Below, piece after piece: positions 6,237 through 43,988 of a stretch of 64,000 nucleotides of DNA. Location: NCBI GenBank assembly GCA_023213395.1, contig CM041465.1:119481741-119545740 (forward strand). Reading direction: 5' to 3'. The DNA is from Cycas panzhihuaensis (taxonomy: Eukaryota; Plantae; Cycadophyta). The notes below the pieces were generated by a model. That model did no database searches. It was not told the DNA's origin and worked only from the letters and a program-made list of their open reading frames with translations. The position numbers were made by a program, and so were the translations under genes. Each line of letters opens with the position of its first letter. Position 1 is the stretch's first letter.

Positions 6237-8472
6237 TGTAACAATGCAATAAAGATCCTACAAGGTATGGTTAAGTAATTGGTATGTATTACCATTTTAT
6301 TGTTTTATTTGTTTAGATAATTCTGGCATATAGTACTTGAGAATATCTTTGAGTTTAATTTATAATCAAAAGATTATAACAAGATTTATGTGATATGATA
6401 ATTTAGCCCTCAACTTATGGCATTAGAATACCTATAGGGCCAAGGTTGAATATGAAATGAGTTAATTGGATATAACACCATGCCAATAGGTCATAGAACT
6501 ACCTACTATAATAAGCTAATGTTGGTGATTTTGATATAACCATTCCTATTTTTTTGGGAAAATAAAACCAAGGTTTCTAATATAGAGATAAAGTAACTAA
6601 CCCTTTTTAGCATGGCTTAGTTAAGTGTTATGGTTATACTTGGAGAAAAAGCCAACCCTTCTAAATTAAAAAGTACATTAGTTCTAAATCCTTTAACCAT
6701 TTATTAGTATAAGGGTTTATGGTTCCTAATTAAATATTTTCAACTTCTTGACTATAATCTTTATTGAGTAGTTAATCTCACCATCTCAATTTGTCTTTAA
6801 CATGTTTTAGCACTTATCTCAATTAGTGACAAGCCTAATATCATATATATAGGAGCAAATTATACCTATAACAATAATACCTATGCCTCTTTCATGAGTT
6901 CCATGACATTTTTGCTTGTTCCTACATAGACTTGTTTATCATCAACCCTAGTACTAAGTTACATAATGTTGTCACTTGACCATACACATAAAGGATGAAG
7001 TCTAAAAACTAATACGTAGTTAAGGTTATCCTTGTTATATACCATACAAATTCCCTTGCATGGGGGAAAGTAATATGGCATGAGGCTCAAGGGATGTGAT
7101 TACTTTATTATGGTTTATGCACTAATAATTGAGTTTGTGAGCATGTGAAATAAAGAGACTTGGAACCAAAGGGGAGATAAAATGAAAGGGTAATATAATT
7201 ACAAGGATAGGAGTTGTTGAGAGGAGATATATATGGTTGTAGAGAAGAGGAGGCAAGGAGAGCAGTGATAGAGGTGACTCATTTAGCTCCTATATAGGCT
7301 ATTATATACCTGATGGACTAACTCATGAGGGTACCTCAAGCATCTTGCATAATCCTCAAGGTTGTGGCTCCATAGTCATGCATTTCCATGGCTCAATTAT
7401 TGGGTAAGCCACATATTATTAACATGGCATAATGTTCTTATAAGACATCCATTAAGGTTATATTCAAGCATAACCTTACATCTATTAAACAGAAAGAGTT
7501 TGAAGGAAATGTATCCTCTTCTCTTAGTTAATATTATTTTCACTAGTAGTGATCTAGTTTGGATAGATGAGTACAAATTTGAATTTGTATATATTTGATT
7601 TTTATAGTTTATAAGTAGTTGTATTTTATATTCTTTCGTGTTCTTAACTTTCATGTTCTTAACATGGCATTTTATATGAATGCTACAAATATGGTTTGTG
7701 AAATAGTAAAAATTATACTAAGGCCTTCAATGTGGTATTTATTTTAGCTCATGATGCACTTCTTATTAATTGGGGTTTTATACTTCCATGCTTTAGATAA
7801 GGGATCTGCTAAATAATGAATTGCCAATATAATTGGCATCTATATATGATAGTTAAAAATACCTCATATTTATATAAGCCTTTTGTTTTGAGATGACATT
7901 CAACTAAAAATGTTTGGTGACTAATTATAGTTCAAGTTTTAAAAAGGCCTACTTATTTCATCTTTTATATGCTTAAGATATGACATAGCATAATTTTAAG
8001 AACAAGTTTTCCTACATAGTGAAGCTATAATAGAACATAATACAACAAGTAACATCCATTGATGAAACAAGCATGCATACCTTTCTTCTATAAAATGTAC
8101 ATTTGATACACTCATATTACAATTGTTGGGTAATATTACTTATTATTTGGGTGCATGTATGCATGTGTAGTAGCTCTGCAATATGTATGTTATGACTATT
8201 AGTATGATGAGGATTATTGACCTAGCAAACATCCTTGGGAATGGTAATAACCTGATGAGCACATTTTTAGTCTCTCTAATATTGGCTTTTCTTAGATCAA
8301 GTTAGCTATCCCATAAATTATTATATATTAAGGGTTAATACAACTTTAACTACATGTAATGATAAGGTGGGCTATTACAATTATCATTAATTCCTCTAAT
8401 AATGGGATTTAGTTAGGACAAACTAACTATATTTTGATTTGACTATGGTTACTAGCTAGTAGGTATGTCACA
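6237..8472 (-). mobile_element. Solo-LTR-like insertion (~2.24 kb) in the integrase of the old Tat element
   Basis: Termini TGTAACA...TGTCACA, flanked by ATGAA/ATGAT (4/5 TSD). Removing it restores INT HRISSSCYP*AN. A minus-strand CTATATA followed by a CT-rich tract lies near 7295-7240. No coding domains recognised. Confidence 0.75.
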
Positions 8473-8871
8473 ATGATATCCTATGATTGATATGGAACTT
8501 GTTGTATAACTCATTAATGTGGGTGTTATAAAATAGGGTTATATTGTCTATGAAGATGATGTCGGGGATCTCAAATCTACAAATAATGTATTAGAATATG
8601 AAAGTGGAAATCACCTTCTTAATTATAGTGCTTAACAAAATAGACTCACTCCATCTTATGATATACTCTATGGTGGTTAGGATGAACTTACGACTACTAG
8701 ATGATGGAAGATATATTTTTTCAATGAGGTCAAAAATCCATTGGAAAAATAATCACTATGAGAGGATGAATCTCAATGAAGTGGTAGACTAATGAGTCAA
8801 GGAGGAGCACACTTGGTGCCTCTTATATTTTTGTATATAAATATGCACATCTTTAAATAGAGTAGGCTAGT

Positions 8872-10499: not shown

Positions 10500-13400
10500 G
10501 GCTCCCTAAAGTCAAAGTGACAAAATTTTGGCACTCAAGAATTAGGTGACCAACTTTTAGTAGGAATTCAAATAAGAAATAACCATTATGCATGAGAAAG
10601 TTAAAGAAGAAATAGCTACTATACATCAAGATATTAAATTAGATATGTCAACGCTTATATCTAGGTCAGATATGAAAAATATATTGTAGCAGATAATGCT
10701 TATCTCTACTAATCTACTAATCCCATTAACTTTGCTCAGCCCCACAATACATCAAATGATAACTCTGCCTCCATGTCAGTAGTAACTATTTCACTATAAG
10801 ATCATAATCCCTGCATTTGATCTTAACCCCAACAAGGATAGTACATGAAGGTAGATTAGTAAATTAGAGTTATGCTTTACCCTCAACTCGATGACAATCA
10901 ATGATTAACTTATATTTGCATCTATCCATTTAGATAAAAAGGTGTATTGTTAGTTCTAATGATGAAAATGGGAATACCCTTCTAGTCAATCTTGGGCCCA
11001 TTTCTCTACCGGCTTCTTCACGTAATATGAGGATACCTGGAACTAATCCTTCTTTACCTAGGTAATATGGTTAAAATAAGTATTATCTATTGAAGTGTAC
11101 ATAGATAAGTTTTAATCTTTACATAATCGAGTTGATTAATAACTCAATAAATAAATAAAGATAGATACATATGTATCCATGCTTAAAGAGTGCATCTAAA
11201 TGCATCTTAAGATTGCGGAATTCACCTTAGAAAGGCCCACTCCATTTAAACAAGATTCCACTTGGTTTCAATGATCATGGACAAGCTAATTATCAATGGG
11301 ATACCATCTGGTCTCAAAGATTACACCTAATAGACTACCAACAATCATGGCCATAACTAGAAGACCCTCAATCTTTATCTACTAAGTACCATTCAGAGGA
11401 ACCATGATTAAAATTCATTCACATCACTTTAGTAGAGGCACAATACAGTTAGGAAGCTAGTCTCTGTATATAATACTTAGAAAAGTAGACCCTTAGTTAT
11501 GGTAGAGTTTGTAAAGCCAAGAAGATGATGTTTATAATCAACCCTAACTTATCTCTAGAAGATGATCCTAATTCTGATCATGAATATAATAAAGACCCCC
11601 AAGATCTCCCTACTAAAGAGCTACCCCTTCATCCTAAACTTGAAGTTTCTTTATCTATTGTAACCTAGACCTTATATCCTAAGCCACTTTATGTTAAAGG
11701 AATATTTCAGAAAACCCCCATCACCATTCTAATCGATGGTGGTGTATCAGTAAACTTCATTGACATATCCATCACCAAACAATCTAATCTTTATATAGAA
11801 CCCAAGATGGGCTTCATCTATTCCCTACCTAGTCATCACACTCTTCATTACATAAGGATGACTGAAAACCTCACTATTCATATTAGCTCTTATATCCTAG
11901 TCTCTAATTTTTATACTTTGTCCATAGATGGGTAAGATATAATTCTTGGTGTATAGTGGCTCTAAATATTAAGAATCTATAACACCAACAATACACCTAT
12001 AGCCCCATTCATCATGTTCAAAGTTCATATAAGCTACTCACATAAACTCTATAGGATGCAATCCCCCCCAAACAAAATGATCTCACCTACTAGAATGCAT
12101 AGATAACTCAATTGCAATGTGGGGTACATTATCTGTCTCAATAATATCTAGGCTCTTATAGTTATTCACCCTAATATCTAGCAAGTATTAGATCAATACC
12201 AGTTAGTATATGCCTCACTACCCACTAGCCCCCCACCTGACTAATGCTATTATCATACTATTGAGTTACTAGTTCACATGACTCCATCAGTCTTCAACCA
12301 TATAGGAATTCATATTTAAAAATAATGAAGTTGAAAAAATCACTAAGGAATTAATGGACATTAGCATTATTTAACCTAAGAAGAGCCTATATACTATACT
12401 CATCATGTTAATTCATTAAAAGGATGGCTTATTTTGACTTTATATCAACTATCATAAGTTAAGCAAAATAACCATAAAAAATAACTTTCTTATGCCATAG
12501 ACTAACGACATGTTAGATTAGATCCATGGTAATGAGGTCTTTATCAATCTTGATCTATAGTTAGGATATTGCTAGGTCCCCATCCTATCAAAAGATAAAC
12601 ACAAAAATGGCCTTTCAAACTCACCATGGCCATTTCAAGTTTCAAGTCATGTCATTTGGCTTGTGTAATGCTCCAACTACCTTGTAGACCCTAATGAATA
12701 AAATATTCTCTCCATACTTACAAAAAATTGTCATGATGTTTTTTGATGATATCCTTATCTATAGCTCAAACATACCTGCTCATATATCTCATTTGGAAAT
12801 AATTCTCCAAATCTTCATTGAGAATGAGTTATATGCTAAATTCTCTAAATACGTGTTTGGAAAAAATGAATTATAATACCTTGGCCATATTATATCATCT
12901 ATAAGGGTTCAGGTAGATCATAATAAAATTTTAGTCATCACCAATTAGCCAACCCCCAAAACCCTTACCTAATTGCGATCCTTCTTAGGACTTACTAGAT
13001 TCTATTGATAGTTCTTCTAAAATTATTCTACCTTGACCACCCCTTTAACCCACTTGCTTAGGAAAGATTCCTTCTAATGGTCTCCCTTTTCCAACAAAGC
13101 ATTCATCCACTTTAAGGAGGTCATGACAACCATCTTAGTTTTAGCCTCGATAAACTTTACTCGCCTATTCCAACTAGAATGCCATGCATTTAGATTCAGA
13201 TTAGGTGCCATCTTAATATAGAAATTCTACCTAATAGCTTTTGAAAGTAGGAAACTCAAGGAATATGAGTGAAAACTTTCCACCTACTAAAGGAAATATA
13301 GGAAATCCTCCATGCTTTTGAAAAATGGTGACAACCATCATAACCTTGTTACCTATTAGACCAACTAGTCCTCTTAGAAGAACATGCTAAATGGCTTAAT

Positions 13401-13793
13401 CATCTTCAACTTTTTGACTTTATAATCACTTATAAAAAGGAAAAAGATAATATTATAGTAGGCACTCTTTCTTGCTTACCATTCCTTGTATCTAATGAGA
13501 CCACTCATTATCTTGAGGATCCTACCCTTCACACCATCTCTACCTCATAACTAATATGGATACAAGAATTGGCCTTAGATAACCAATTCCAACTAGACTT
13601 TTCATAATGGACTAATAAGGTTCATACATAAAAGGATTGGTCCATCTATAACACTCTCTTATTACACCAAAACCACATCTTTCTACATCCTAAATCAACT
13701 TATATTTCTAAGATTTTATTGAAATATTACTCTTCTGCATTAGGTGGTTATTTAAGATTCAATAAGACATATCACAAGACCCATTCAGACTTC
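10500..13793 (+). pseudogene. Chromovirus gag-pol pseudogene, 5' part (gag, PR, RT, RH, start of INT zinc finger)
   Basis: Many stops and frameshifts. Motifs IDGGVSVNF, MSFGLCNAPTT, FDDILIYS, YLGHIISS, IAFESRKL, GGYLRFNKTY..DF. Start is approximate. Confidence 0.8.
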
Positions 13794-16380
13794 TGAAACG
13801 CTCGCTACGGGGCGGTGTCCCTACGTCTAGCAAAAGGATATAAGAATACGCTATGCTAACTAAGTTAGGCAGCGAGGACCTCACCTCACAAGGCGTCCGT
13901 GTGCCGGAGTGCAGATTCAGGACTGCAAGGTGCCTAGTTGCTTTCAGGTAGCCGTGTAAAGCAAGGCCTTCCTACCTTTCAGATGGCCAGGAAGGAGAGA
14001 GAATGCCTTGCGCGTTGCGTCTTCTCAAGGCAATGAAAAGGCAACGAATGAAAGGGAAACTAACTAATGTGTAGGTGAATGCAGGAAAGGGCGCAATGAG
14101 GGCAGCTCAAATACGATGCGAGCAAGCTATCTACGCTATGCTACTCTAGATAAAGCAAGAAATGATGTAAAGAAAATGAATGCACTTTCCCTTTTTCCTT
14201 TATATTCCTTTATAATTTCCTGACTACTCAGGCAAATGCATGAAAGGTAGTAATGTAAAAGGGGATACATGGGAAACAAGGGGAATACCTGGATCCAGCG
14301 CCTAAATGGAGTGCAACTTGTCTCTCTGAGTCCCGCTCCTTTCTTCTCTGTTTGTCGTGCATGCGTTGCTGATCGGCGGTAGTTGCCAGAAGCAATAGAA
14401 GAGGGGTTTACTTACCTCCCCATAAACATGCAAAAGCAAATAAAACAGAAAGAAACAAAAAGCTTGAAACCAAAGAAAGAAATGCACTACTTAGGGAACT
14501 AACCTACAACGGGCTCATCCCACGTATCACTCCACCAATGCACGGTCCTGCAAATGGGTGAGAAGAACACCTTCCTCTCCGAAGAGAGGCCACGAGATAT
14601 ACCAAAATATATATATATATACTGAAATCAAATGGAACTAAGATCTATGCTAAGCATCGAAATATAACTGAATGAAATAACAACATACAAGAAATGCTGT
14701 CACCACCATACACCACGAAGACACTCGAAAGGGAAAGGAGTATAGCCTCGGGATGGCTAACTTACCCATGGGAGACCTCCATGGAACTCAGGAAGGAAAA
14801 CCAGTTAGCAATAAGGTAGTGAAGCAACAAACCGTAACAAGGAAAAGAATAACAGAAAAAAAACTGGGGCTTACGTAGGGCCCAACACCAACAGGTGAGA
14901 CTTCTGGCAATGACATAGTGACGGGTTACTTATGCTAGTCTGAGCACCCTAACTAAGTTCCCTAAATTCCCTTAACCCGTTCCCTAAGAAAGCGCTGATG
15001 GCAAAGGGAAAGAGGACAAGGGACATAACCCTTTGGGAGAAGGACAGCAATGGGGGGTGGAACCCCGCCTACCTCCCTCAAATCCTCGTATGTTACTCCT
15101 TTGCACCAGCTAACTAAGGAAGGGGTGAAAGAGATAGTTTAAGGAAAATAGAGAGGCTTCAAGGAAACAATGGGAGGGTATTACTAATCCAGTGTAACAC
15201 TATGAGGAAAAGCTAGCTAATTAAGATCCCATTCATTAACAAACAAAAGAAATATGAATAAAATGGATTGCAAGTAGAAAATAAGAAGTACCTCATAGGA
15301 AGAAGATCAATCATGAACTTTGCTGCTAGGAGACAGCAGTAATGACCAACATATGAGGACTGATCATGAGTGGTTCTTACAAGAGTGAGAATGAAGAAAA
15401 CTCCTTACAAGCTTGGAGCCTTAGAAGTTGGCTCTTTGGGAAGCTTTTGGGTGAAAATGCCACTTAGATCCTTGAGCACCTGTAAAGAAAGATGGGGCTT
15501 GCTATGGAGAGCTGTAGGGGGTAGCAATGGCCCTGCAAGTCCAGCTGATAGCAATCATTTTCTCCTTTGTCTAGTTGCTGTGTATGTAGATTATCTTTTT
15601 CTGTTTGTTTTCTTGTTGAAAAAATTAGAAATTCTTCCAAGAGATTTAAAAAATGGACAAAAGATCCAAAAAATGGGGAGCAAAATCCCCTTTATCCCCT
15701 TGTTCACAGCAAGTAAACATTGGGGATGTCAGGGTGACTCGAATCAATCAACGCCATGCGGCAGTTCCACAAAAAAATAGAAACTGTCGCGTGGTTCTCT
15801 TTTTTTCTAATTTCAAACAAATATATCATGACAAACTCTACCAGATCGCGAAGAAATGCCGTCATCGCTAAGTTTATAGTGGTATCCGACTGGAAATAAA
15901 AAAGAGAAAAAATAAGCAGAAACATCAGGTTTTGGGGTAAAAACCAAGGTTAAACATAAGTTAGAGCAGCTGGGGGAATGTCCAGGTAATGGGCAGGTAC
16001 CCAAAATAATGCAAAGAGTCCTAACTAAGGATTAAATCAGGCTTAAGAAGGACTGCAACATAAGCAACATGTTGTAACAGGAGTAAACAGAGCTGACGAA
16101 AACATCCCGGGAGACCGTAGAGACAACGTGGGTGGCTGTGCGACATACATGGTGTAGAATTCGCTGAGGAATGCCCCCGCTGTGAGTCGTCATAGGCTGA
16201 TGGTATGCCGTAAGCATATGCATTATGAGCAAGTAGAAAAGCAATGTGTGCAGGCAGGCATATGTCAAGCAACCTACTCTAAATAACCTCAATCAAGCAT
16301 GGGCAAGAAAAGGTAAGAAAATATACCTGAACAAACCTGCGTCGATGCGTCTCGAGTCCATTCCCAGTAGCTGGGAAACA
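13794..16380 (-). repeat. 3' LTR (2587 bp)
   Basis: Direct repeat of 27809-30367 with TG/CA termini. PPT abuts at 16381. Confidence 0.95.
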
Positions 16381-16390
16381 CTACCCCCTT
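16381..16390 (-). promoter_or_regulatory. Polypurine tract
   Basis: Minus strand AAGGGGGTAG immediately before LTR start TGTTTCCC. Confidence 0.85.
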
Positions 16391-16462
16391 GGCAGCAGAG
16401 CCTCACTGCTCAGAAGCATAACATGATGGTGAATGCTGACAATCAAAGATATGAGTAACACA

Positions 16463-16465
<3 letters not shown>

Positions 16466-16500
<35 letters not shown>
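16466..16500. repeat. (TA)n microsatellite between aRH and PPT
   Basis: Visible directly. Confidence 0.95.
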
Positions 16501-16502
<2 letters not shown>

Positions 16503-16769
16503 CAATAAAGAGCAGCACGTGGACCAAGGGCGTAGGTAAGTGTCATGGCGGAACGCGTGGACAAGGGAGACGGAGACAAGGACAACATAGGGGCTGTCTA
16601 CGCGTCGTCTAACATTAACCTGTAAATGAAATAAGCAAGTAAAAGGGGATGCCCCCATTGTCGAAGAGCAACGTGAAGTAGGAGGGCATCCAGTAAATAG
16701 AGCAAATATATCGAACTAACATCAACCAAAGACTGTGCATGGGCCGTGCAAGCCTCGGGGCTGCTATCT

Positions 16770-17181
16770 GAAGAGGGAGGCGATGCTCAAGGATGAGGTG
16801 GACGAGGCTGTTGGCCTCAGCATTGAGGTGCCTAGGGATATGATGAATATCCACTGACGAGAAACAAGCTAGAAGAGACCTGGCAGCAGACATGAGGGTT
16901 CTCAGGTGGGGGCATCGCACTTGGTAAACCTAGGTGAGATGGGACACCACAACTTGAGAATCACAAAGCAACACAATGGATCTGAGATGGAAACATAGAG
17001 CATCGGTAAGGGCTTCAATAACGGCTATGTACTCAACTTCATTATTAGTTGCCTCATGAAGAAAGACCTCAGAATATAAGAAATCATGTCCAGAGGGGCT
17101 GCAAAGAATCCACGCAGTGGCAGAAGGTCCGAGGTTGCTGCGACTTCCACCATTGGCGAAAACGAGAAGGGAAATGCCTGA
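16770..17181 (-). pseudogene. Stand-alone archaeal/bacterial-type ribonuclease HI (aRH) domain
   Basis: One frame: SGISLLVFANGGSRSNLGPSATAWILCSPSG..LHEATNNEVEYIAVIEALTDA..SIVLLCDSQVVVSHLT*VYQVRCPHLRTLMSAARSLLACFSSVDIHHIPRHLNAEANSLV. This matches the RNase HI motifs DGxSRxNPGP, TNNxAEY, DSxLVV and IPRxxNxxADxLA. The first and last catalytic Asp are Asn (GCCGA>GCCAA), and there is one TAG. Confidence 0.9.
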
Positions 17182-17700
17182 ATACTAAGCTCTGGTAGCA
17201 AACTAATAGTAGTGAAAGTAAAAGAAAGACTCGAATGGCAAGGAAAAAAGTGGCCGAGAAGGGTAGGAGGACCTAACAATGAGGTTATCCGAGAACGAGA
17301 GCAAGCAATTCAGCCATTGGCTGAGAGTGGGCAGAGAAAAGATGCCCTGGAGTGCCAAAGGTTACTTTGGGAAGCAAAACATGCCCCCAGACGGGGGAGC
17401 ACTCCCTTTGGAGACCCCAGGGGTGAAAAAGGGCTGCGGAAATGAGGCCAGGGTGGCAAAATAAGCCAAACGAGTATAAACTCAGGCACACACAGGAGTA
17501 GCGCACAAAACGATATAGAAGGGCCCTGGCAAAAGTACGATAATGAGGCGCCACAAATACCCTTACAAGGGAGGGCAAAAAGGGCATCACTAGAGCACAA
17601 TAGGCAATAGGGCCAGAAGGCAAAGGCTATCAGGGCAACGAGACGATCCCAACGATCGTCATGAGCCGTAACGGAAGAAGTGCCCGTCGGGGCCCCCGCC

Positions 17701-17707
17701 TATATAA
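17701..17707 (+). promoter_or_regulatory. TATA box of the antisense PMD gene
   Basis: CCGCC-TATATAA-GG after a GC-rich block, about 28 nt before a TTCATTTT initiator-like site and 71 nt before the ATG at 17772. Confidence 0.65.
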
Positions 17708-17771
17708 GGAAAACGAATGAAAATTGGATTCATTTTCACCGGCTCTCGTATGAAACCAGAGCCTTTTCCTT

Positions 17772-20253
17772 ATGATGCAGAGTGCTACCCAACTTCGGAG
17801 GCATGCAGGAGATGATCCAACCATTGGATCCGAGCGCAGTGAGAGTCATTATGACCAGAGAGATGAGATGGCGATGGTCAGGCCAGATTCAGTGAGTGGA
17901 TCTCACGAAACCTTCCCCATTTCGAAGTTCAAAGTTTATTGCTTTTTAGTTAATTTTAATACATTTTTATGCCCCTTATAGGCAATTGGATGCCTCTCGG
18001 AGTCCAAATTGGACCCAGAAAGAGATGGGGATCTAGGCATTAGAGAGCCCTAGTCCCAGTGGGCCCCACAGGGGTCCACCACAAAAATTTTGGGGATTTT
18101 CTGGGCTGAAACCCTCTTTTTTAGGGGGTTGCCATTCATACCGCAGCCAAGATTGTGGCACCGCGATCTTGGCCGCATGATCGCTATAGGAAAGCGATCA
18201 CCGCGGGACCCACTCCAAATTTAGCGGTATCGCTAAATTTGGAGCCAGACACGTAAAAATAAAAAAAAACTAGAAAATGGGCCACCCTAAAATTAGAAAG
18301 AGAGCTAGGAGCCTAGATGACTGCTAGGAGGCTGACCTTGACTGACTTTTGATGATTGCAGGCAGTTATCGCGGTGGATAACCGCGAGAACGTCGGCATG
18401 CCGATACTGAGTTACTTGGAGATGGCATCCCAAGAGGACAAGGCGACTCTTAAGAGGTGTGGCCTATACAAGGCCCTCAAGACCCCCTAGTTCACGTCAG
18501 ACCAGAGGCTTCTAGTTGACATCGTGTCACACTGGGACAAGAGGAGGCATATATTTCACTTGCCTCAGATAGGTGACGTCACTATCACCCCAAGAGATAT
18601 CAGGCAGATTTTGGGGGTACTAGCGACAGGGAGGCCAGTGAGGCTGGGAGCGCTGCCTAGCACCGAGGTAGCACATAGGGAGGTAGCCCAGTTTTTCACA
18701 GGGACCGACAGGTGGGAGCAGAGGGGAGCTGCCCTCCAGACTATGCTCATGTCCAAGATTCCTCGGGTGAGGAAGTTGATATTAGTATGCATTCTGTTCT
18801 AGATTTCCTGGAAATAGAACTACAGGGAGATCCCCGGAGGTTGGGTGGATGTAGTGCGCTGGTGTGAGGCTGGCGAGAGGATGGATTGGGCTACTCTAGT
18901 TGCGGCGAACCTTGTCGCCTAGCTAGACACCATCCAGAGATCCGACAGAGGAGGGTTCTCTTATAGCACACTATTGCAGTGCTGGTTTTTTGACCATTTT
19001 GCGGTAGTGGCACCAACAGGGGGGCCATTCCCCATAGCAGAGTGGGCCCCGATGGCCCACAGATGGCAAACGTGGCTCCGAGGGACAGAGGATCAGGCGC
19101 ATGTCCATCGGTCAGTCGATGCGACATCATTCAACCTCCTCACTCTGACAGATTATATAGCAGAGCCCTATAGAGCAGAGAGGTAGGGGAGTAATAATGG
19201 AGTGGGCAGAGCAAGATCACCCATCGACGACGATGATGACAATGATAGCGATGGTGATAGCGGTGACGACGGTGATGATGGAGGGGATGGGGCTGGCCCA
19301 TCGCGACCTGTAGGAGAGGCAGGTCTATCACAGTCAGTAGGAGGAGCAGCAGGACTATCCGGGACTGCCGGAGGAGGGGCACGCCCATCAGGAGCTGCCG
19401 AGGTGAGCAGGGTACCAGAGACCGGGGGTCGCAGATTACGGATCGTGAGGAGATCCGGAGAGGCAAGGGTCGAGCCAGTCCCTGTTAGGGGCGAGGTAGA
19501 GGCAGAGGATGTACCTGAGGACGAGGTACCTACAGCTGGCGGAGGGCCAGGAGACGAGGATGTCACCCAAGCAGAGGAGCCGGCGGCCGTGGCAGGTGAG
19601 ACCTAACCGTTTCCTTAGTCGTTTGACATCTAGATAGATGCTTGATTTCCTTTTATTATGGTATGCAGTGAGGATATACACTGACACACGACATGTTACA
19701 TTGACAGGTGTAGCAGAGGTCCAGAGACTAGTGGAGGCCATGGTGAGGGAGATGTTCCCTCAGGTCTACGCAGAGGGGTAATCGCCCATCCAGGCAGAGG
19801 ATGTGCCTAGGTCGGTAAGAGCCCACATGCAGGCATTTGCCCCACTGGTGAGGGTGAGAGACATCTGGGTTGCAGAGACCCAGGAACACATGGCATTCCA
19901 AGGGCAGCCACAGCGAGAGCTCAACGTGGCCAAGGGCGAGTGGGATGAGTCCAGGCCTTAGAGGCTTAGAGTGGACTAGGAGGAGATGCGGGGAACAACA
20001 TCTGTATAGCAGTACTAGAGGAGCGCCTCAAGGCGACAGAGGAGAAGTTTCAGAGTATGGAGGAGGGACTCCAGGGAGAGAGGGATCACATCCAGGTTCA
20101 ATACGACCAGCTAGTGGCGCAGATGGTCTTGAGGTCGAGCAGGAGCCAGACCCACACACATACAATCTACGACCCGAGATGGCCTCGATGAGGGGAGCGA
20201 GGCAGGCCTGGGGAGCTCAAAGGGATGTGGTCCCCAGGAGAGGGATCACATAG
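17772..20253 (+). pseudogene. Three-exon Plant Mobile Domain (PMD / aminotransferase-like, MAIN-like) gene, antisense to gag-pol; exons 17772-17891, 18362-19595, 19669-~20253
   Basis: Exon 2 holds DQRLLVDIVSHWDKRRHIFHLPQIGDVTITPRDIRQILGVLATGRPV and LQCWFFDHF (PMD signature LxxLVERW..THTFHLP.GE.TITL.DV..ILGLP..G.PV; LQ.W..EHF). Intron 1 is GTGAGT...CTGAC...TTGCAG (phase 0) and intron 2 is GTGAGA...ATGCAG (73 bp, phase 1); both join in frame. Exon 2 stays in one frame with only in-frame stops. The 3' end is approximate because of frameshifts. Confidence 0.85.
18143..18244. repeat. Three adjacent CpG-rich inverted repeats in PMD intron 1
   Basis: 18143-18176 (16-bp arms, 13/16 matched), 18178-18200 (TGATCGCT/AGCGATCA, perfect), 18213-18244 (CTCCAAATTTAGCG/CGCTAAATTTGGAG, perfect 14 bp). 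Confidence 0.9.
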
Positions 20254-20418
20254 ACTAGGGGATGGCACCCCAGGATCAGGACAGCAATAAATGAGATGTA
20301 TATATAGTTTTGATGGGAAAGCACAGGCCTCCAGGGGGTCATATGTAGGCTCACATGATTGTACCCCCCCTGCAAGGATCCCGGCTTCCCACATGCACGA
20401 TGTACCATGACATTTTTG

Positions 20419-20475
<57 letters not shown>
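20419..20475. repeat. Compound (AC)n(AT)n microsatellite
   Basis: Visible directly. Confidence 0.95.
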
Positions 20476-20480
<5 letters not shown>

Positions 20481-21000
20481 ATTGGAACCCCATTTTGACA
20501 TGAAATCGTGCATATCATGTATGATAGAGATAACATGTATGATTTACTTTGTAAATGAATATTTTTTGTATGTTGTAAATGTAAATATGTAAATATGTTT
20601 TGTTGTAAATATTTGGTTATAAAATGCATGTGTTTCTTTCCATGTATAGCTATATGTCTAACAGGAGTACACACGTCCACCATAAGCAGAGGTGATCGAG
20701 AGGTGTAAGGTTAGAAATAGAGCGACACGCACGTCCACAGAGGAGCATAGCAGAATATGTGAAGGAAACAACAGGCAGGAGAGGGGAGTGACGATACTCC
20801 ACAGCGTCATCCTAGTAAGAGAATGCCCAAATAGGAGGACAAGGGTTCCCGAGAGGATACGGGAACACAGGAGGAACCAGAAGACAAAGCGAAAATCCAT
20901 CTTAAATTACCATTCTACCCGTGGTTGGGAGGAATGGGAACAATTTAAAATGGTAGTTTAGGCTCGTTTCAGAGCATGGCAGAGAAAAAGAGCAGAAAGA

Positions 21001-24000
21001 TCACGCGTAAAACTTCTTAAGGAATTTTTCATTGACTACTTTCTCAAATTCTAAGCCTTCTAAGGTGGCAATCCTGTATGCACCGTTATCGAGGCTTTCG
21101 AGAATGACGAAGGGGCCTACCCATTTGGGCCCGAATTTGGCCAAGCGATCATAAAGGTACTCCAATTTGAGGATGTGGTCCCCGGGGCACAAAGGATGAG
21201 CACAAAGATGTTTGTCGTGTGTCCTTTGCAAGTGGGCTTTTGAAGCAAGGTTCGCTTGATAAGCCGTTAAGCACCTCTTATCTAGGGCTTCGAGGTCTGG
21301 GAGGCGAGCCTGGCAAATAGACTCCTCGTTAATGAGACCTCAAAGGGAAACTCGAAGAGAGGGGATCTCCACTTCCAGTGGGAGTATCGCCTTGGTTCTG
21401 TAGACTAACGAGAATGGGGTCATTCCAGTAGCCGTGCGGATGGAAGTGCGATAAGCCCAGAGGGTGGAAGGGAGTTGGACATGCCAATCCCTTTGAGATT
21501 GGGCAACGGTTTTTCTTAAAATGCTGACGAGCATTTTGTTGAAGGATTCAACTTGCCCGTTTGCTTGGGGGTAATAAGGGGATGATGTCTTATGCGAGAT
21601 CTTGAATTTCTCACACAATTTGTCCATTTCCTTATTACAGAAGGAAGTTCCATTATCCGTGATTAGGATATCTAGAATCCCGAAACGACAGATAATATGC
21701 TGGTAGACGAAGGTGGCTATCATCTTACTAGGGGTAGTGGACAGGGGGATTGCCTCTACCCATTTAGTGAAGTATTCGGTAGCAGTTAAGATATATTTAT
21801 GTTGTGCGAAAGATGGCGGTGATATAGCCCCAATGAGGTCTAAGCCCCATTGAGAAAAGGGCCATGGAGACACGATAGGGTGCAACGCCTCGGAAGGTAC
21901 GTGAGAGACATTGGCATGCTCCTGGCATCACCGACATCTAAGGGCATAAGCGTGGACGTCCTTGAACAAGGACGACCAGTAATAACCCATGCAGAGGATC
22001 CTTTGGGCCATGGATTGGCCCCCAAAGTGGCCCCCATAAATGCCATGATGGCATTCGTGGAGTATTTGGTCCGCTTCGTCAGGAGTGACGCAACAAAGCA
22101 GGATCCCATCAAAAGATCTCTTGTACAACACTTCATCCACAAGGAAGTGTTGCCTAGTAGTGGCGTAGATATGCGACCTAACCTTGTTACTAGCTTCAGG
22201 GCGACATTCTTACTGAGTCAGATATCGCACAATATCACCATACCACTCGCTGTCGGTGAGTGGGTGGGGAGAAGCATCATGGACGGTCATGATAGACTCG
22301 TCCGGGAAAGAGTCGTCAACAGGAACGCCACTCGCATTAGGAATGGTAGCATCAGCTAACTTCTCTGCTACTATTATTCCCTTCTTTGACTTCCTGTTAA
22401 TGACTTGCAAGTCGAACTCTTGAAGCGGTGACTACCAACGACCGCCTCCCTACCCATCAAGTCCGAACGAGTAAGTAAGTAACGCAAGGGATCAGATTGA
22501 ATGATCACCTTAGTTGTATTACCGAGCAAGTAATGCCTAAACTTCTTGGTCGTATGGACCAAGGAGAGGCATTCCTTTTTGGCATGGGGATAGTTTAATT
22601 TAGTGGCAACGAGAGTGCGGCTGATGAAATAAATAGCCCTCTCAGTTCCTGAATCATCCTCCTGTGCAAGCATTGCGCCCAGGGATTCGTCGGTTGTCAA
22701 GGTGTATAGAATGAAGGGCCTATCAAAACGAGGAGGCGCCAGTGTAGGGGCGGAAACGAGAGCTTTCTTGAGTCCTACGAAGGCCTTTTGGGTCTTGTCT
22801 GACCAAACAAAAGGGGTTTCTTTCTTCAATAGGTTCGTAAAAGGCTTGGCGTTTATGGCAAAATTTGCCAACAAACACCTCAGAAAACCAAGTCTGCCTA
22901 GAAACAACTTAATTTGTCATTGGGTCCTAGGCAGCGGCATGTCAAGGATTGCCTTGACTTTTTCCAGATCGATTTGGATTCCTTGTTGGGACACGAGGAA
23001 ACCCAAGAGTTTGCCTAAAGTGATGGCAAACACGCATTTCAGCAGGTTCAGGCTAACGTGATACTTGCGGCATCTTGTGAAGATGGCATGCAAGTCAGAA
23101 GGATGATGGGCTCTGGTACGTAAAGGCCCATCATATCGTCCATGAAAACCTTTAACGTATTGTTGATGAGGTCGTGAAAGATAAAATATATGGCTCTTTG
23201 ATAAGTAGCCCCTGCATTCTTAAGACCAAAGGGCATTGCCTTGTAGGCAAAGGTACCCCATGACGTAGTGAAGGCCATCTTATGGCGGTCTTCAGGAGAA
23301 ATCTGAATTTGGTTATAGCTGGAGAAGCTATCCATTAAGGATATTACTTCGAATCCAGCCGTACGATTAATTATTTGATCAATGAAGGGAAGAGGAAAGT
23401 TGTCCTTAGGACAAGCATTGTTTATATCGCGAAAATCGACACAAATACAAATGGTCCCATTCTTCTTAGTAACAGGAACGATATTTGATACCCACTTAGG
23501 GTAATCGATGGAAGAAACGAGTCCTGCATCCAGAAGCTTCTCAACCTCCATCTTAATGGCAGCTGAAAGCTTCGGGTGAAGGGGACACTACTTCTGACAT
23601 ACTGGGCGAGCATCAAGAACAGTCATAAGGTTATGTGTGATGATGGAGGGGTCAATGCCCTTCATATCCGAGTAGTCCCATGCGAATACATCATGGAATT
23701 CCTGGAATAGGAGGGAGTATTCCCTCACTTCATCAAGAGTACATTCCGCTCCTACCTTGATGATCTTGTCCAGGGTAAAGACTATGTCCTGAGTTGCCCC
23801 CATGCACATAGCATTCCCCTCCTCGAAATGGAGGGAGGCAAGATTGACCAGAAGAGAGGAAACGGAAGAAGGGATCGGATCAGCTAATGTGGACCCAATC
23901 GCTAAGACCTTCTGGTGGCCAAGCTTATGGTGACCAGGAGGCAAACTGGGCATGGAACCTGTTAAGTGCTCCAACAAAGCCTCATTATCTTCGAAGTAGT

Positions 24001-27000
24001 CCACCCGATGGATGACCTGGCTTCGAATGGACGAGGCGCAGGATAGCGTGGGAGTGATAGGACCAGTATGGCCTGAAAGCTGCCTATCATCCCCAAGGGA
24101 CTCTAAAGGAGAGTCAAGGAGAGGTCCCTTGTAAAAAGTAAGAGGGAAACTCTCAACATCATCACCTATGGGAGGTGATGGGATGGAAGAGCTAGGAACA
24201 CGATGATCAACATGCGCAATGTCATGTGACATGTGAAAATGACCAGGCTCTATAACAAAAGGGATCCTAGGAGGATGCCCCATACTAGTGCGGAGAAACG
24301 AAACTGGGTGAGGATGATCCTCATCCTCGCTATGGGACTCGTCATCGTTAAACATGGTGAGGTAGCCATAGCTCCCAACACCAATGGGGGTGAAACACAT
24401 CAAACCAGGAGAAGAAGATATGGGATCTTCTTTATGGTAAGAGGAATCGGGGATTCCAATGGAGCAAGCCGAGACATGATCAGAAGGGTGTTTGTTTCCC
24501 TTCGTATGGCCATGGCTTGCCTGAGTAGAAGGCCTGACTTGTTTGGCGAGCGATCGCTCACGGGAGACAACTTTCATTTGCCTATTATGGACAAATTTAA
24601 GTTGCCCCCAACGGGTGGAACACACGGCTCCCATTTGGTCAAGCCATAGTTGACCCAGAAGCAAGTTGTAATCAACGTCAACATCGAGGACGACGATGTC
24701 AATAACGATAGTCTTGTCCTCAAGAGTAAGGGGTATTGAGATAGATCCCAAGGGAGTCTTCTCGCTACCGTCATAACCCTGATAATGCCATGGAACAGGT
24801 TCTAAGGTGGAAATGCTAAGTTCTTGCATAACGCGTAAGGGCATGGCATTGACGGAAGAACCGTTGTCTACGACGGTTCTTCGCAATGTGCAATCAGGAG
24901 TATCTATGGTAATGGTAAAAGGGAAGTTCCATTGGCGCTCCCTTCCACTAGACGCAGGAAGATCTCTGGGATTGAAAGAGATGATAGGTTCACAACTTTG
25001 GGTTGTGCCCAAGGCGTGAACGGACATGTCATTCGATCCTAGAGCTTCCAAGAGGAGTGTTCGCTGCTTGGGGCAACTTCTCAAGACATCCATGATGGAC
25101 ATCTCGGCAGCCACAGTGAGAAGCTCTTCGACTACGGAGAAGGGCTTACCCCTCCCTGTGGGTTGGGTAAGGGCTCTCCTAAAGTTGAATCTACCGGGGC
25201 AGACGGGAATGCTCTTGGGAAGCGCGAGAATATCTGGAGGAATGGCTTCCGGAGGAGGATCGAGTTGCAAGGTAGATGCGGAGGCGCCTGTTGCCTCGTT
25301 TGCGACTTGAGACTGGGTCAACGTATAAAGGGGAGTGGTCTCAAGCATTTAGATCACCTTCTTTCCTTTATTATGGGACCGCGAAGGTGATGGAGTATGG
25401 CGGCCAGGGGAGCACGAAGGGGAAGATGGCCTTTGCACACCCTTCCCTCTACCATATGAAGGGTGAGAATCGGGGGATCTATCCTGATTTTGATTGTTCC
25501 TTTACTGAACATCATGACCATGTTCCCCATGTTTGGGGAATGGGTCTCTATGAATGGGTTGATCGAGGTTAGGCCTCGATGCCTGCCTAGGGGACGAATC
25601 ACGTGGTGGGACGTCGTGTGGGTGCTGCACTCGACAATGCGAATCGTCATGGAAACACTCCCTGTGGATGGAACACCACCTTTTCTCAAGGGGAGGATCG
25701 ATCCTCCTTGCTTGAGAAGACTGGATGTTACCCCCTTTGGGGGGCACCGCACGAGAAGCCTATTGAACTGGTTTATGGGAGGTCGGTGATGAAGGAGGTT
25801 GGAGTTTAAGCTCCTTCATAGTGTGCTCAAATGAGCGAATAGTGGAGGTAAGAGGATCTAGGGTCCTCTCAGTCAGATGAGAGGTGGGCCTAGTGGGTTA
25901 CGAAGGTTTGGTTTCCTTCACTCGGGGAGGTGCCTCATGGTGTTGTGAGGGCTTAGGAGGTTTCTTGAGTCCATCTTGGATCTTAATGGCCTCCAACGCC
26001 AAGCACCTCGTAATCGCGGAGTCACATGTGGTTGGCCCCATCTTAAAGACTTCCACATGCACTTCGAGGTGAAGCGCGTTGACGAAGAGATCTCACTTCA
26101 ACTCTTCAGGCAACGTGGCCTTGGTAGAGTAAAGGAGATCATGAAAGTGTCACACAAAGTCACGATTCATTTCGTCGTGACCTTGTTTAAGCGACAGAAG
26201 TGCTTTCATTCCACTTTTGAATGGACGGGCTACATCAAAATAGTTGATGAACTTGTCCACCAATTGCTGGAACGAAGAAATTGAATGAGCAGGGAGATGG
26301 TAAAACCACTTGAGGGCGTCACCCTGCAAGGATCACAGAAATAACTTCATTAGAATATGGTCGTAAGCCCAATAATCAATGCACGCCATAGAGAAACTAC
26401 ATACGTGCTCGGTTGGGTTTTGCGACAAAGTTCCGTTGAATTTGGGAACTTCAGGAGGGTGAGGCGGCAGGTTCGTCCTTAGTGCCTCAACAGATAATGG
26501 CGTCGACCTATAGTCTATAAAAGGACATGTCCTTACATGGGCTAACAGATCGATGACCGGCAAAGGAACAGGAATGGATGGGGGTGGTAAGCCCATCCCT
26601 CCCCGGGGAAATGCCCCTTGTTGGAAGGGGGGTTGCAGGTAAATGCCTTGAAAGGGAGGTATGTTCCCTTGCAAAGACGCGGTAATAGGGGTTGCGCTAG
26701 ATGGTGGAAATGAAGGGTGAGGGACCGGGTTTTTCCCATACGGGCCACCCGTAGGTGGCGCAACTCCGTATGGGTGCAACGGGTCCACCCCATAAGCAGG
26801 AAGATGGTTTCCCCTACCCTGCCCCCAAGGTTGAGACGTGTAACCTGGGGGCACGTAAAGGGAAGGACCACCAGCAGGGTTTTAAATATATGTAGGAGTG
26901 GGTTCTACATAGTTAATGGTAGCAACTCTAGTAGGGCCTCGAGGCCTACTAGAGAACACATGCGCCACGTTCGAAGGTGGCACATTCATTTGACTCGGAA

Positions 27001-27634
27001 ATGACATTCTAACCCTGAGTTGGGGAAAGGACATGCCACGAACAGGTCTCGAAGAAGTAGGTAGCGCAACACTTGCCCTAGGAGCCAGTGTAGACATGGC
27101 ATAGGATGAGTGTGCACATGCAGGAGCATCATTCATTGTATAAGACGCAGGTATGGATGAAGAAGATGCTACATTGCGCAATATTTCTTCAAACCACCTA
27201 GGATGCGGTTGGCGGTGAGTTGTTCGGAAGTACTCACTGAGTGCTTCGACTACGTCGGCAGGAGGGGTATCCTCGTAGCCATACGAAGTCAACGGGATCT
27301 TGAATGTCGAGGATCCCTCAGGACGCTCCTCGTAAGGCTCACCAGTAGGGTGGTGAGTCTCGTGAGGAGATGACTCTTCTGCTGCATGAGCAGAAGGACG
27401 AAAGTCAGCAGGGTGAAACTGGTCATCTGGATAATAGATGGAATTATCGCCCCCCTAGGCAGATTCCGGAACAGATGAGGGGAACTCTTGAGTTCCCAAA
27501 GCAATGGTATGGTAAGCCCAATCGGACGGGTAACCTTCCATTGTCGAATTGGGGTTCGACGACGGAAGGGAACAAGGTGATTGGTCTTCTGACAACGGCG
27601 GCAGACCTCGCAAGCGACGTGAGAAACGTCGCAT
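21001..27634 (-). pseudogene. gag-pol: gag-pol polyprotein (gag, zinc knuckle, PR, RT, RH, INT), disrupted by several stops and frameshifts
   Basis: Starts MRRFSRRLRGLPP (ATG 27634). gag VPKFNGTLSQNPTEHVCSF, knuckle WCSIHRECFHDDSHC (~25680), PR VVDNGSSVNAMP (~24880), RT WVSNIVPVTKKNGTICICVDFRDIN..MPFGLKNAGATYQR..FMDDM, RH FILYT..LGAMLAQ..AIYFISR, INT CHHGIYGGHF..YYW..PWPFSQWGLDLIG..YPQANGQVES..WVGPF. Stop at 21001. Confidence 0.95.
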
Positions 27635-27789
27635 GCAATGCCTTTGCGAGCGTTGTTAGAAGAAAACAAAAAGAAGGAAATGAAGCAAGCACATTGGGGG
27701 TTACCCAACTGAAAACACGGAATAAGAGACTACCTAGAGGCAAGAACACCAACGAAAAGGGGAAGCGAATCTAGCTCCCTTACTGGCAG

Positions 27790-27807
27790 TCCCCAGTATG
27801 GTCGCCA
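27790..27807 (-). promoter_or_regulatory. Primer binding site, tRNA-Arg type
   Basis: Minus strand TGGCGACCATACTGGGGA one base after the LTR end. Resembles the Ogre/Tat Arg PBS TGGCGACTCCACTGGGGA. Confidence 0.8.
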
Positions 27808-27808
27808 G

Positions 27809-30367
27809 TGAAACGCTCGCTACGAGGCAATGTCCCTACATCTAACAAAAGGATATAAGAATACACTATGCTAACTAAGCTAGGCAATGAGGACCTCACC
27901 TCGCAGGCGCCTCGGCGCCAGCATAGATTCAGGATCGCAAGGTGCCCGTTGCTTCTGTGTAGGCAAAGCAAGGCCTTCCTACCTTTCGGATGGCCGAGAA
28001 GGAGAGGGAATGCCTTGCGCGTTGCGTCTTCTCAAGGCAATGAGAAGGCAACGAATGGAAGGGCAACTAACTAATGTGCAGGCGAATGCAGGAAAGGGAG
28101 CAATGAGGGCAGCTCGAATACGACGCGAGCAAGCTATCTATGCTACGCTATGCTAGATAAAGCAAGAAATGATATAAAGAAAATGAATGCACTTTCCCTT
28201 TTTCCTCTATATTCCTTTACAATTTCTTAACTACTCAGGCAAATGCATGAAAGGTAGCAATGTAAAAGGGGATACACAGGAAACAAGGGGAATACCTAGA
28301 TCCAACGCCTGAATAGAGTGCAACTCGTCTTTCTGAGTCCCGCTCCTTTCTTCTCCATTCATCGTGCATGCGTTACCGATCAACGATAGTTGCCGGAAGC
28401 GATAGAAGAGGGGTTTACTTACCTCCCCATAAATATGCAAAAGCAAATAAAACGGAAAGAAACGAAAAGCTTGAAACTAAAGAAAGAAATGCACTACGTA
28501 GGGAACTAACCTGCAACGCACTCGTCCCATGTATCACTCCACCAATGCGCGGTCCTACAAATGGGTGAGAAGAACACCTTCCTCTCGGAAGAGAGGCCAC
28601 GAGATATATCAAAAAATATATATATACTGAAATCAAATGGAACTAAGATCTATGCTAAGCATGGAAATATAACCAAATAAAATAGCAACATATAAGAAAT
28701 ACTCTCACCACCATACACCACGAAGACACTCGAAAGGGAAAGGAGTATAGCCTCGGGATGGCTAACTCACCCACGGGAGACCTCCATGGAACTCGGGAAG
28801 GAAAACTAGTTGGCAACAAGGTAGTGAAGCAACAAACCGTAACAAGGAAAATAATAACAGAAAAAAAACTGGGGCTTACGTAGGGCCCAATACCAACAGG
28901 TGAGACTTCTGGCAATGACATAGTGATGGGTTGCCTATGCTAGTCTGAGCACCCTAACTAAGTTCCCTAAATTCCCTTAACCCGTTCCCTAAGAAAGTGC
29001 TGATGGCAAAGGGAAAGAGGACAAGGGATGGAACCCTTGGAGAGAAGGACAGCAATGGGGGACGGAACCCCGCCTACCTCCCTCAAATCCTCGTATGTTA
29101 CTCCTTTCCACCGGCTAATTAAGGAAGGGGTGAAAGAGATAGTTTAAGGAAAATAGAGAGGCTTTAAGGAAACAACAGGAGGGTATTACTAATCTAGTGT
29201 AACACTATGAGGAAAAGCTAGCTAACTAGGATCCCATTCATTAACAAACAAAAGAAATAGGAATAAAATGGATTTCAAGTAGAAAACAAGAAGTACCTCA
29301 TACGAAGAAGATCAATCATGAACTTTGCTGCTAGGAGACAGTAGCAATGATCAATGTATGAGGACTGATCATGAGTGGTTCTTGCAAGAGTGAGAATGAA
29401 GAAAACTCCTTGCAAGCTTAGAGCCTTGGAAGTTGGCTCTTTGGGAAGCTTTTGGGTGAAAATGCCACTTAAATCCTTGAGCACATGCAAAGAAAGATGG
29501 GGCTTGCTGTGGGCAGCTGTAGGGGGCAGCAATGGCCTTGCAAGTTTAGCTGATAGCAATCCTTTTCTCCTTTGTCCAGTTGTTGTGTATATAGATTGTC
29601 TTTTTTTGTGTGTTTTCTTGTTGAAAAAATTAGAAATTCTTCTAAGAGATTTGAAAAATGGCCAAAAGATCCAAAAAATAGGGAGCAAAATCCTCTTTAT
29701 CCCCCTGTTCACAGCAAGTGAACGTTGGGGATGTCAGGGTGACTCGAATCAATCAATGCCATGCAGCAGTTCTGCAAAAAAGCAGAAACTATCACGTGGT
29801 TCTCTTTTTTTTAAATTTCAAACAGTCATACCACTAAGAATTTACTGCATCAAAGAAATGTCATGCATCGCTAAGTTTACAGTAGTATCCGACTGGAAAT
29901 TAAAAGAGAAAAAATAAGTAGAAACATTAGGTTTTGGGGTAAAAACCAAGGCTAAACATAAGTTAGAGCAGCTGGGGGAATGCCCAGGTACCCAAAATAA
30001 TGCAAAGAGTCCTAACTAAGGATTAAATCAAGCTTAGGAAGGACTGCAACATAAGCAACATGTTGTAATGGGAGCAAACAGGTCTGACGAAAACATCCCG
30101 GGAGACCGTGGAGATAACGTGGGTGGCTGTGCGCCATACGGGGTGTAGCATTCACTGAGGAATGCCCCCGCTGTGAGTCGTCATAGGTTGATGGTGTGCC
30201 GTAAGCACATGCATTATGAGCAAGTAGAAAAGTAATGGCAGTGTGCATATGTCAAGCAACATACTCTAAATAACCTCAATCAAGCATGGGCAAGAAAAGG
30301 TAAGAAAATATACCTGAACAAACCTGCATCGATGTGTCTCGAGTCCATTCCCAGTAGCCGGGAAACA
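27809..30367 (-). repeat. 5' LTR (2559 bp)
   Basis: Direct repeat of 13794-16380 with the PBS adjacent. Candidate TATA (CTATATAC on the minus strand) near 29590. Confidence 0.95.
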
Positions 30368-30372
30368 ACTTC

Positions 30373-43929: not shown

Positions 43930-43988
43930 TAGTTTGTATAAGAGGGGATATGATGGAGGTAGTTTGTATAAGAGGGGATATGATGGAG
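43930..43988 (+). repeat. Perfect 30-bp-period tandem duplication
   Basis: TAGTTTGTATAAGAGGGGATATGATGGAG at 43930 and 43960. Confidence 0.95.

Follow-up and report, generated by a model that had tools for sequence, protein, structure and literature searches.

A detached RNase H and an antisense PMD gene in the 3' internal region of an old, probably TatIII-type retrotransposon of Cycas panzhihuaensis

Positions 16,770 to 20,253 of a 64,000-nucleotide stretch of the Cycas panzhihuaensis genome (assembly GCA_023213395.1, contig CM041465.1, positions 119,481,741 to 119,545,740; hereafter the window, whose numbering is used throughout) lie within a long terminal repeat (LTR) retrotransposon on the minus strand. 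We conclude, with a probability of roughly 80%, that they represent the 3' internal part of a single old Tat element of the gymnosperm type (TatIII, or "post-integrase, structure #3") that has decayed neutrally and in which a PMD gene is located between the integrase and a solo open reading frame (ORF) for an archaeal-type RNase HI (aRH); the routes by which the two genes would be expressed we infer. A first-pass annotation had described a Tat element with an antisense PMD gene and a detached, minus-strand RNase HI arranged head-to-head in its 3' internal region, bounded by an integrase stop at 21001 and a polypurine tract at 16381. Pfam matches and the relatives of both units bear this description out, and the bounds hold as well, the pol stop coming after the SH3 domain and the polypurine tract adjoining the 3' LTR. 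Between these landmarks the PMD and aRH units face away from each other; it is the position of the PMD gene between the integrase and the solo aRH that makes the two genes head-to-head. The paired accessory units are real and not a chance pattern of ORFs.

The aRH unit is the remnant of a stand-alone ORF that runs on the minus strand from 17175 to about 16780, as judged by Pfam, by alignment with PDB entry 4E19 and by alignment with the solo ORFs P0121, P0122, P0124, P0125 and Gb_11691. Its two open pieces, 17184-16933 and 16929-16618, gave RVT_3 matches (E values of 5.8e-9 and 1e-4) and an RNase_H match (4.2e-7). The nearest solved structure is 4E19, the RNase HI of Halobacterium, and an intact relative, P0125, in which the full catalytic tetrad is present, has matches to the same type 1 enzymes of archaea and bacteria. 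When P0125 was compared with the window by tblastn, it aligned with 17169-16777 at 46% identity. The unit sits 3.8 kb past the pol stop and is not contiguous with pol. In this copy the aRH is a pseudogene that has lost its start codon and two catalytic residues and is interrupted by one stop. Its start column is occupied by an Ile codon (17175-17173), and the first Met of three close relatives falls in the same column. An in-frame stop is found at 16932-16930, and the open frame continues from there to 16615. The DEDD tetrad is incomplete, with Asn at the first Asp (17154-17152, by comparison with 4E19) and at the last Asp (16812-16810, by comparison with the relatives); the catalytic Glu and the middle Asp are retained.

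An exhaustive profile-free search with the 84-residue piece of aRH returned 547 proteins at E values of 0.001 or less. Those with at least 45% identity are nearly all short solo ORFs of 73-142 residues, and among them we found no proteins of pol length and no fusions of integrase (INT) to aRH. A profile search added the Ginkgo gene models Gb_11691 (P0276, 142 residues), Gb_19334 (P0279) and Gb_07833 (P0277). Five Ginkgo-type sequences begin alike, with MA..LN placed 17 residues ahead of the first catalytic Asp, and are 142 residues long, and the three sequences closest to the aRH of the window have a Met 7 residues ahead of that Asp. The Ginkgo solo models resemble the unit described here in that they encode its RNase HI domain, with colinearity across about 131 residues, in a stand-alone protein of about 142 residues with its own Met, but they differ in being only 46-48% identical to the window aRH and in placing the Met 17 rather than 7 residues before the first Asp. 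These comparisons show that relatives keep the RNase H as an ORF of about 140 codons with a Met of its own, and they support aRH as a stand-alone gene in the lineage. A scan of metagenomes with the aRH alignment recovered prokaryotic RNase HI only (30-53% identity) and no plant elements.

The PMD unit is encoded on the plus strand in a single reading frame, 18362..19603, which comprises a PMD domain (18491-19183) and an acidic tail (19187-19603). Two pieces of the domain, 18491-18799 and 18923-19183, match positions 15-78 and 175-244 of the PF10536 profile, colinearly and in one frame. Their scores of 25.4 and 20.9 bits are each under the gathering cut-off of 34.9 bits, and profile positions 78-175 are represented by only about 40 codons. 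Translation of 18362-19606 reveals five in-frame stops (18488, 18800, 18815, 18920 and 19184), and in this copy the PMD unit, like aRH, is a pseudogene. Frameshifts were considered and ruled out, the entire domain being in one frame with the stops as its sole interruptions. The first PMD piece has 71-77% identity to the public proteins P0285 and P0286, both of which have ordinary residues at the positions of the window's first three stops.

The first-pass annotation had the PMD gene start at 17772 and be spliced. Part of this proposal stands: a proposed exon 1 (17772..17891, plus strand), consisting of 40 open codons from the first ATG past a TATA box, can be joined in phase to the PMD frame of exon 2 through a canonical GT/AG intron whose donor (CA/GTGAGT, 17892) and acceptor (TTGCAG/, 18361) are both strong. 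Two in-frame stops directly precede the acceptor. As a model from sequence only, however, the spliced start is no better placed than a second candidate: translation could equally begin at a Met at 18398 that is common to the window, P0285 and P0286. Against a start there, P0286 and the window also agree in the residues that immediately precede this Met. Further 3' exons may lie at 19708..20253 on the plus strand, where a GT at 19596 and an AG at 19707 join in frame and where the first-pass annotation had an ORF at 19870-20253. The tail itself (19187-19603) is acidic, rich in Asp and Gly and in the same frame as the domain; a coiled-coil-like stretch at 19970-20188 (plus strand) is in another frame and gave weak spectrin-like Pfam matches (E values of 0.06-0.08). 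Beyond these matches no Pfam domains were found in exon 1, in the acidic tail or in 19638-20250, the exons having been searched individually and not as a joined product, and a scan of viral contigs with the PMD piece gave no matches. We note that the acidic tail and the coiled-coil-like stretch recall the PMD-CC extra ORFs of angiosperm Tat lineages IV and V. The proposed intron 1 contains a perfect palindrome at 18213-18244, with 14-nucleotide arms and a 4-nucleotide loop (CTCCAAATTTAGCG / CGCTAAATTTGGAG), and an imperfect palindrome with 16-nucleotide arms at 18143-18176.

The element that carries these two units is a complete Ty3/gypsy insertion of 16,574 bp on the minus strand (13794-30367). 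Its LTRs (3' LTR, 13794..16380; 5' LTR, 27809..30367) form a direct repeat of 2.59 kb with TG..CA termini, and the whole is flanked by a 5-bp target site duplication, ACTTC, at 13789-13793 and 30368-30372. The primer binding site (about 27808-27791, minus strand) adjoins the 5' LTR and starts TGGCGACC. The polypurine tract (16381..16390, minus strand) reads AAGGGGGTAG on the sense strand and is followed by the LTR start, TGTTTCCC. The two LTRs are separated by a Kimura two-parameter distance of 0.091, with 178 transitions versus 38 transversions (a bias of 4.7:1); the copy is old, and its decay has been mostly via transitions.

The domains of pol follow one another on the minus strand in the order RVT_1, RT_RNaseH_2, Integrase_H2C2, rve and SH3_Tf2-1. 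The remnants of pol extend over 21001..23551 (RVT_1, 23048-23551; native RNase H, 22374-22907; H2C2, 21928-22140; rve, 21340-21885; SH3, 21001-21231), and the stop codon (21003-21001) comes immediately after the integrase SH3 domain. The frame is broken into at least seven ORFs. The best relatives of the integrase are about 60% identical to it, Cryptomeria proteins among them; the host is a gymnosperm with poor database coverage. In the native gypsy RNase H a Lys occupies the column of the catalytic Glu401 of Ty3 and the flanking Asp positions are retained, a substitution that in a decayed copy may also be later damage. The Lys would fit a proposal in the literature by which aRH takes over from a degenerate native domain, although in a copy so decayed it is not decisive.

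Tat elements of this kind have a native RNase H whose catalytic core is degenerate, a second, archaeal-type RNase HI in a short ORF of its own, outside pol and close before the polypurine tract, and an antisense PMD gene. They have been published under several names: TatIII (PMC6317226) corresponds to Tat lineage III (PMC4408406) and to structure #3, or post-integrase Tat H-I (PMC10508981, PMC13468544). The REXdb set of TatIII consists of 39 elements of 12.7-17.3 kb, with a 5-bp target site duplication in 92%, aRH in 92%, an eORF-3'R in 18% and a primer binding site for tRNA-Arg in 64% and for tRNA-His in 15% (PMC6317226). According to the same text, aRH follows INT in gymnosperm TatIII (Neumann et al. 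2019, PMC6317226). For lineage III, Ustyantsev et al. (2015, PMC4408406) place aRNH furthest downstream and report, at the 3' end, the first extra ORF (eORF) for PMD in antisense orientation. Biryukov and Ustyantsev (2023, PMC10508981) report structure #3, with aRH as a separate ORF, from Pinaceae, Cycas and Ginkgo, and ask by what means a domain encoded outside pol would work. Prokopeva et al. (2026, PMC13468544) use the name "post-integrase", place a solo aRH ORF in the 3' UTR and report a conflict as to whether aRH is in pol or separate. The following structural features of TatIII are found here: the order reverse transcriptase, RNase H, INT; an archaeal-type aRH past INT and in a separate ORF; a reverse PMD ORF toward the 3' end; the 5-bp duplication; and a length of 16,574 bp. 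In the published descriptions the likeness lies in the Ty3/gypsy type with a size of about 15 kb, the post-integrase aRH ORF, the 3' antisense PMD ORF, the 5-bp duplication and the gymnosperm hosts, and the nearest aRH relatives include Ginkgo models.

The first-pass annotation, made without searches, knew of no description of this exact layout. A solo aRH and an antisense PMD have each been published for the lineage, and this takes away most of the novelty. The parts and the lineage are already known; the order INT, antisense PMD, solo aRH is not stated in the texts consulted, figures aside. In the text of PMC10508981 and PMC13468544 that we could consult, the solo aRH ORF is described and PMD goes unmentioned.

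Other elements offer precedents for single aspects of the arrangement. Grande of maize, a member of the Tat clade, has an antisense ORF with its own internal promoter in a long region between pol and the 3' LTR (Gomez-Orte et al. 2013, as cited in PMC11963269). The antisense ORFs of Retand, to which Grande belongs, encode TRP28, not PMD, and the aRH of Retand is inside pol, between RH and INT, so that no solo RNase H stands opposite the antisense gene. Athila and Bagy-2, which belong to the env class, in the sister clade of Tat, have a sense ORF between the integrase and the polypurine tract; their subgenomic RNA is spliced (Vicient et al. 2001, as cited in PMC11963269), and they provide a model for the expression of a 3'-proximal ORF through splicing from the leader. 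In those elements the ORF is env-like, whereas here it is an RNase H, and splicing is suggested by motifs alone.

How might the two genes be expressed? Being antisense, the PMD gene must have its own promoter. The best candidate for it would be the TATA box that the first-pass annotation had located in the spacer and that is indeed present, as TATATAAG, at 17701-17708. Only on the plus strand does it fit the consensus; it points to PMD and lies 71 nucleotides before the ATG at 17772. Microsatellites apart, the roughly 11 kb of internal DNA contain only three TATAWAWR sites, this one included. An internal promoter for an antisense gene would have its precedent in Grande, as described in PMC11963269. 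Introns of the PMD gene would survive retrotransposition because the sense genomic RNA, in which they lie in antisense orientation, would be unable to splice them. We also observed a perfect 10-nucleotide inverted repeat (ATAAGGAAAA / TTTTCCTTAT) at 17704-17713 and 17764-17773, one arm of which overlaps the TATA box and the other of which adjoins the ATG at 17772.

The solo RNase H is split from pol by a whole antisense gene and hence cannot be translated within a contiguous Pol. The mechanism that we tentatively prefer for it, at somewhat worse than even odds, is a spliced subgenomic mRNA like that of env. Retroviruses express env from a spliced mRNA, and their major splice donor is just past the primer binding site. 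In the element described here a strong donor-like sequence, CCA/GTAAGG, occupies the same position, at 27784/27783 on the minus strand, 25 nucleotides past the 5' LTR and just after the primer binding site; GT[AG]AG sequences occur once per about 710 nucleotides on that strand. Acceptor-like sites end at 17321, 17205 and 17187 in the spacer, whose sense strand is 63% pyrimidine. The sense strand has only eight strong acceptor-like sites, of which that at 17321 is one; those at 17205 and 17187 are weaker. The putative mRNA would start in the 5' LTR and be spliced from the donor-like site at 27783 to an acceptor at 17321, 17205 or 17187; since these sites are 12-146 nucleotides upstream of the RNase H start, splicing would make the AUG of the RNase H 5'-proximal. 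The protein would then act in trans, supplying an activity missing from the degenerate native RNase H domain. An internal promoter in the spacer, whether or not it is shared with PMD, is possible but less probable, and other routes make up the rest. The hints in the sequence are weak and, on balance, may be said to lean toward splicing over a spacer promoter.

The first-pass annotation had gone further and suggested that the spacer could be a bidirectional promoter, which would drive PMD rightward and the solo RNase H leftward as a self-contained module. We consider such a promoter unlikely. The genes are head-to-head across a short spacer (17176..17771, about 600 bp on the assumption that the ATG at 17772 is the PMD start), a TATA box is present, the antisense PMD gene needs an internal promoter anyway and the pyrimidine-rich sense strand could provide core elements like the Y patch. 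However, the TATA consensus fits the plus strand only; a leftward transcript from near the TATA box would have AUGs in four places (about 17661, 17588, 17383 and 17317) ahead of the RNase H; and the spacer would be about 1.2 kb long if PMD starts at Met 18398. Nor did the further claim that the spacer has retained CpG survive: its observed-to-expected CpG ratio of 0.74 and G+C fraction of 0.51 are within the ranges of the element (0.39-0.89 and 0.40-0.58), with no CpG or G+C enrichment relative to the surroundings. With a one-directional TATA box, ordinary CpG content and four upstream AUGs, a shared promoter is unsupported. A broader proposition, that structure #3 elements conserve the solo RNase H and the antisense PMD as a divergent pair and express the RNase H by a dedicated route, be it a spacer promoter or an env-like splice, we regard as doubtful.

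Two other accounts of the arrangement would dispense with a separately expressed RNase H or with the pair as such. If a sense-strand intron extended from the end of the integrase to the RNase H, its removal would excise the antisense PMD gene and bring INT and aRH into one protein, so that aRH would be part of Pol. In Ogre elements, which are also members of Tat, an intron in pol is spliced. Here, the pol stop overlaps a GT (GC/GTGATC, at about 21003), such that a donor at this place would bypass the stop, acceptor-like sites are found ahead of the RNase H, and the text of PMC13468544 reports the conflict as to whether aRH is in pol or separate. But GTGATC is a weak donor and not a GT[AG]AG site, and in this copy its phase is mismatched with the frame of the RNase H for either nearby acceptor. 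Moreover, an initiator Met and a short N-terminus are conserved among the relatives, five Ginkgo-type ORFs having the same start and three others one Met column, and the relatives at 45% identity or more are nearly all solo ORFs of 73-142 residues, with no protein of pol length and no fusion among them. The existence of Met-initiated solo relatives argues against an obligatory INT-aRH fusion, and we judge the fusion to be very unlikely. It would, if true, reconcile the aRNH at the C-terminus of Pol in the 2015 description with the separate ORF of the later text.

Scarcely credible, finally, is the notion that the cassette is an accident of this copy, arising from a nested insertion or from a transduced host PMD gene that came to lie between pol and a leftover RNase H. 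Only a single copy is at hand, the accessory region is flanked by microsatellites of the (TA)n and (CA)n(TA)n types (16465-16502 and 20420-20475) and the PMD-containing part is higher in G+C than its surroundings, all of which an accident would accommodate. Against it, the PMD region is not bracketed by LTRs, terminal inverted repeats or target duplications; antisense PMD eORFs and a post-integrase aRH have both been reported for the lineage in the published texts; and relatives of the PMD (71-77% identity) and of the aRH occur in other public assemblies.

Some points weigh against our assignment of the stretch to a TatIII element with PMD between the integrase and a solo RNase H, and against the routes of expression proposed for it. 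The order of the genes is not that of PMC4408406, whose text has aRNH at the C-terminus of Pol and the PMD eORF at the 3' end, whereas here PMD lies between the integrase and aRH. Membership in the Tat subclade is a provisional assignment from structure alone, and a single decayed copy is the sole basis for the layout, the splice-like sites and the TATA box. The start Mets of database proteins are partly set by gene callers. The splice-like motifs, moreover, are each compatible with chance (donor, p roughly 0.04; acceptor, p roughly 0.14).

Taken alone, the copy is one more dead retrotransposon of an ordinary sort. What it offers is a clear case, for this lineage, of an aRH set physically apart from pol by an entire antisense gene, and it thereby sharpens the question of how a solo RNase H is expressed and how it arrives at the reverse-transcription complex. 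The sites of interest in this regard are the TATA box (17701), the donor-like site (27783) and the three acceptor-like sites (17321, 17205 and 17187). Were a dedicated route for the RNase H to prove correct, it would answer the question raised in the text of PMC10508981 about an RNase H outside pol and settle the conflict, as the published texts present it, between aRH in pol and aRH as a separate ORF. As for the PMD protein, the PMDs of retrotransposons constitute a clade, PMD-A, that is distinct from the PMD-C of the host proteins MAIN and MAIL1, although both belong to the same PMD fold family, and PMDs encoded by transposable elements have been proposed, without demonstration, to be anti-silencing factors (PMC7156037, bioRxiv 10.1101/2024.09.27.615353). 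A link of the PMD described here to the function of MAIN and MAIL1 would be by analogy only, and the idea of the first-pass annotation that an anti-silencing protein is paired with a nuclease for RNA:DNA hybrids is speculation. If PMD-A does prove to be anti-silencing, such elements would carry a replication enzyme and a countermeasure to host defence as separate genes.

Finally, we note some features of the rest of the window. When the 64 kb were compared with themselves, no further copy of the element emerged, the matches being fragments of unrelated retroelements, and neither ARAGORN, which found no tRNA genes, nor an Rfam scan gave any match in the window. The fragments, at 5993-8749 (minus), 12327-12756 (plus), 31722-32600 (minus) and 42599-44746 (plus), match INT, reverse transcriptase and RNase H sequences and are 26-55% identical to the proteins of the element; the window is retrotransposon-rich and AT-rich intergenic DNA (about 32% G+C). 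Further (TA)n microsatellites are present within the element, one in each LTR, at 14608-14621 and 28617-28626.

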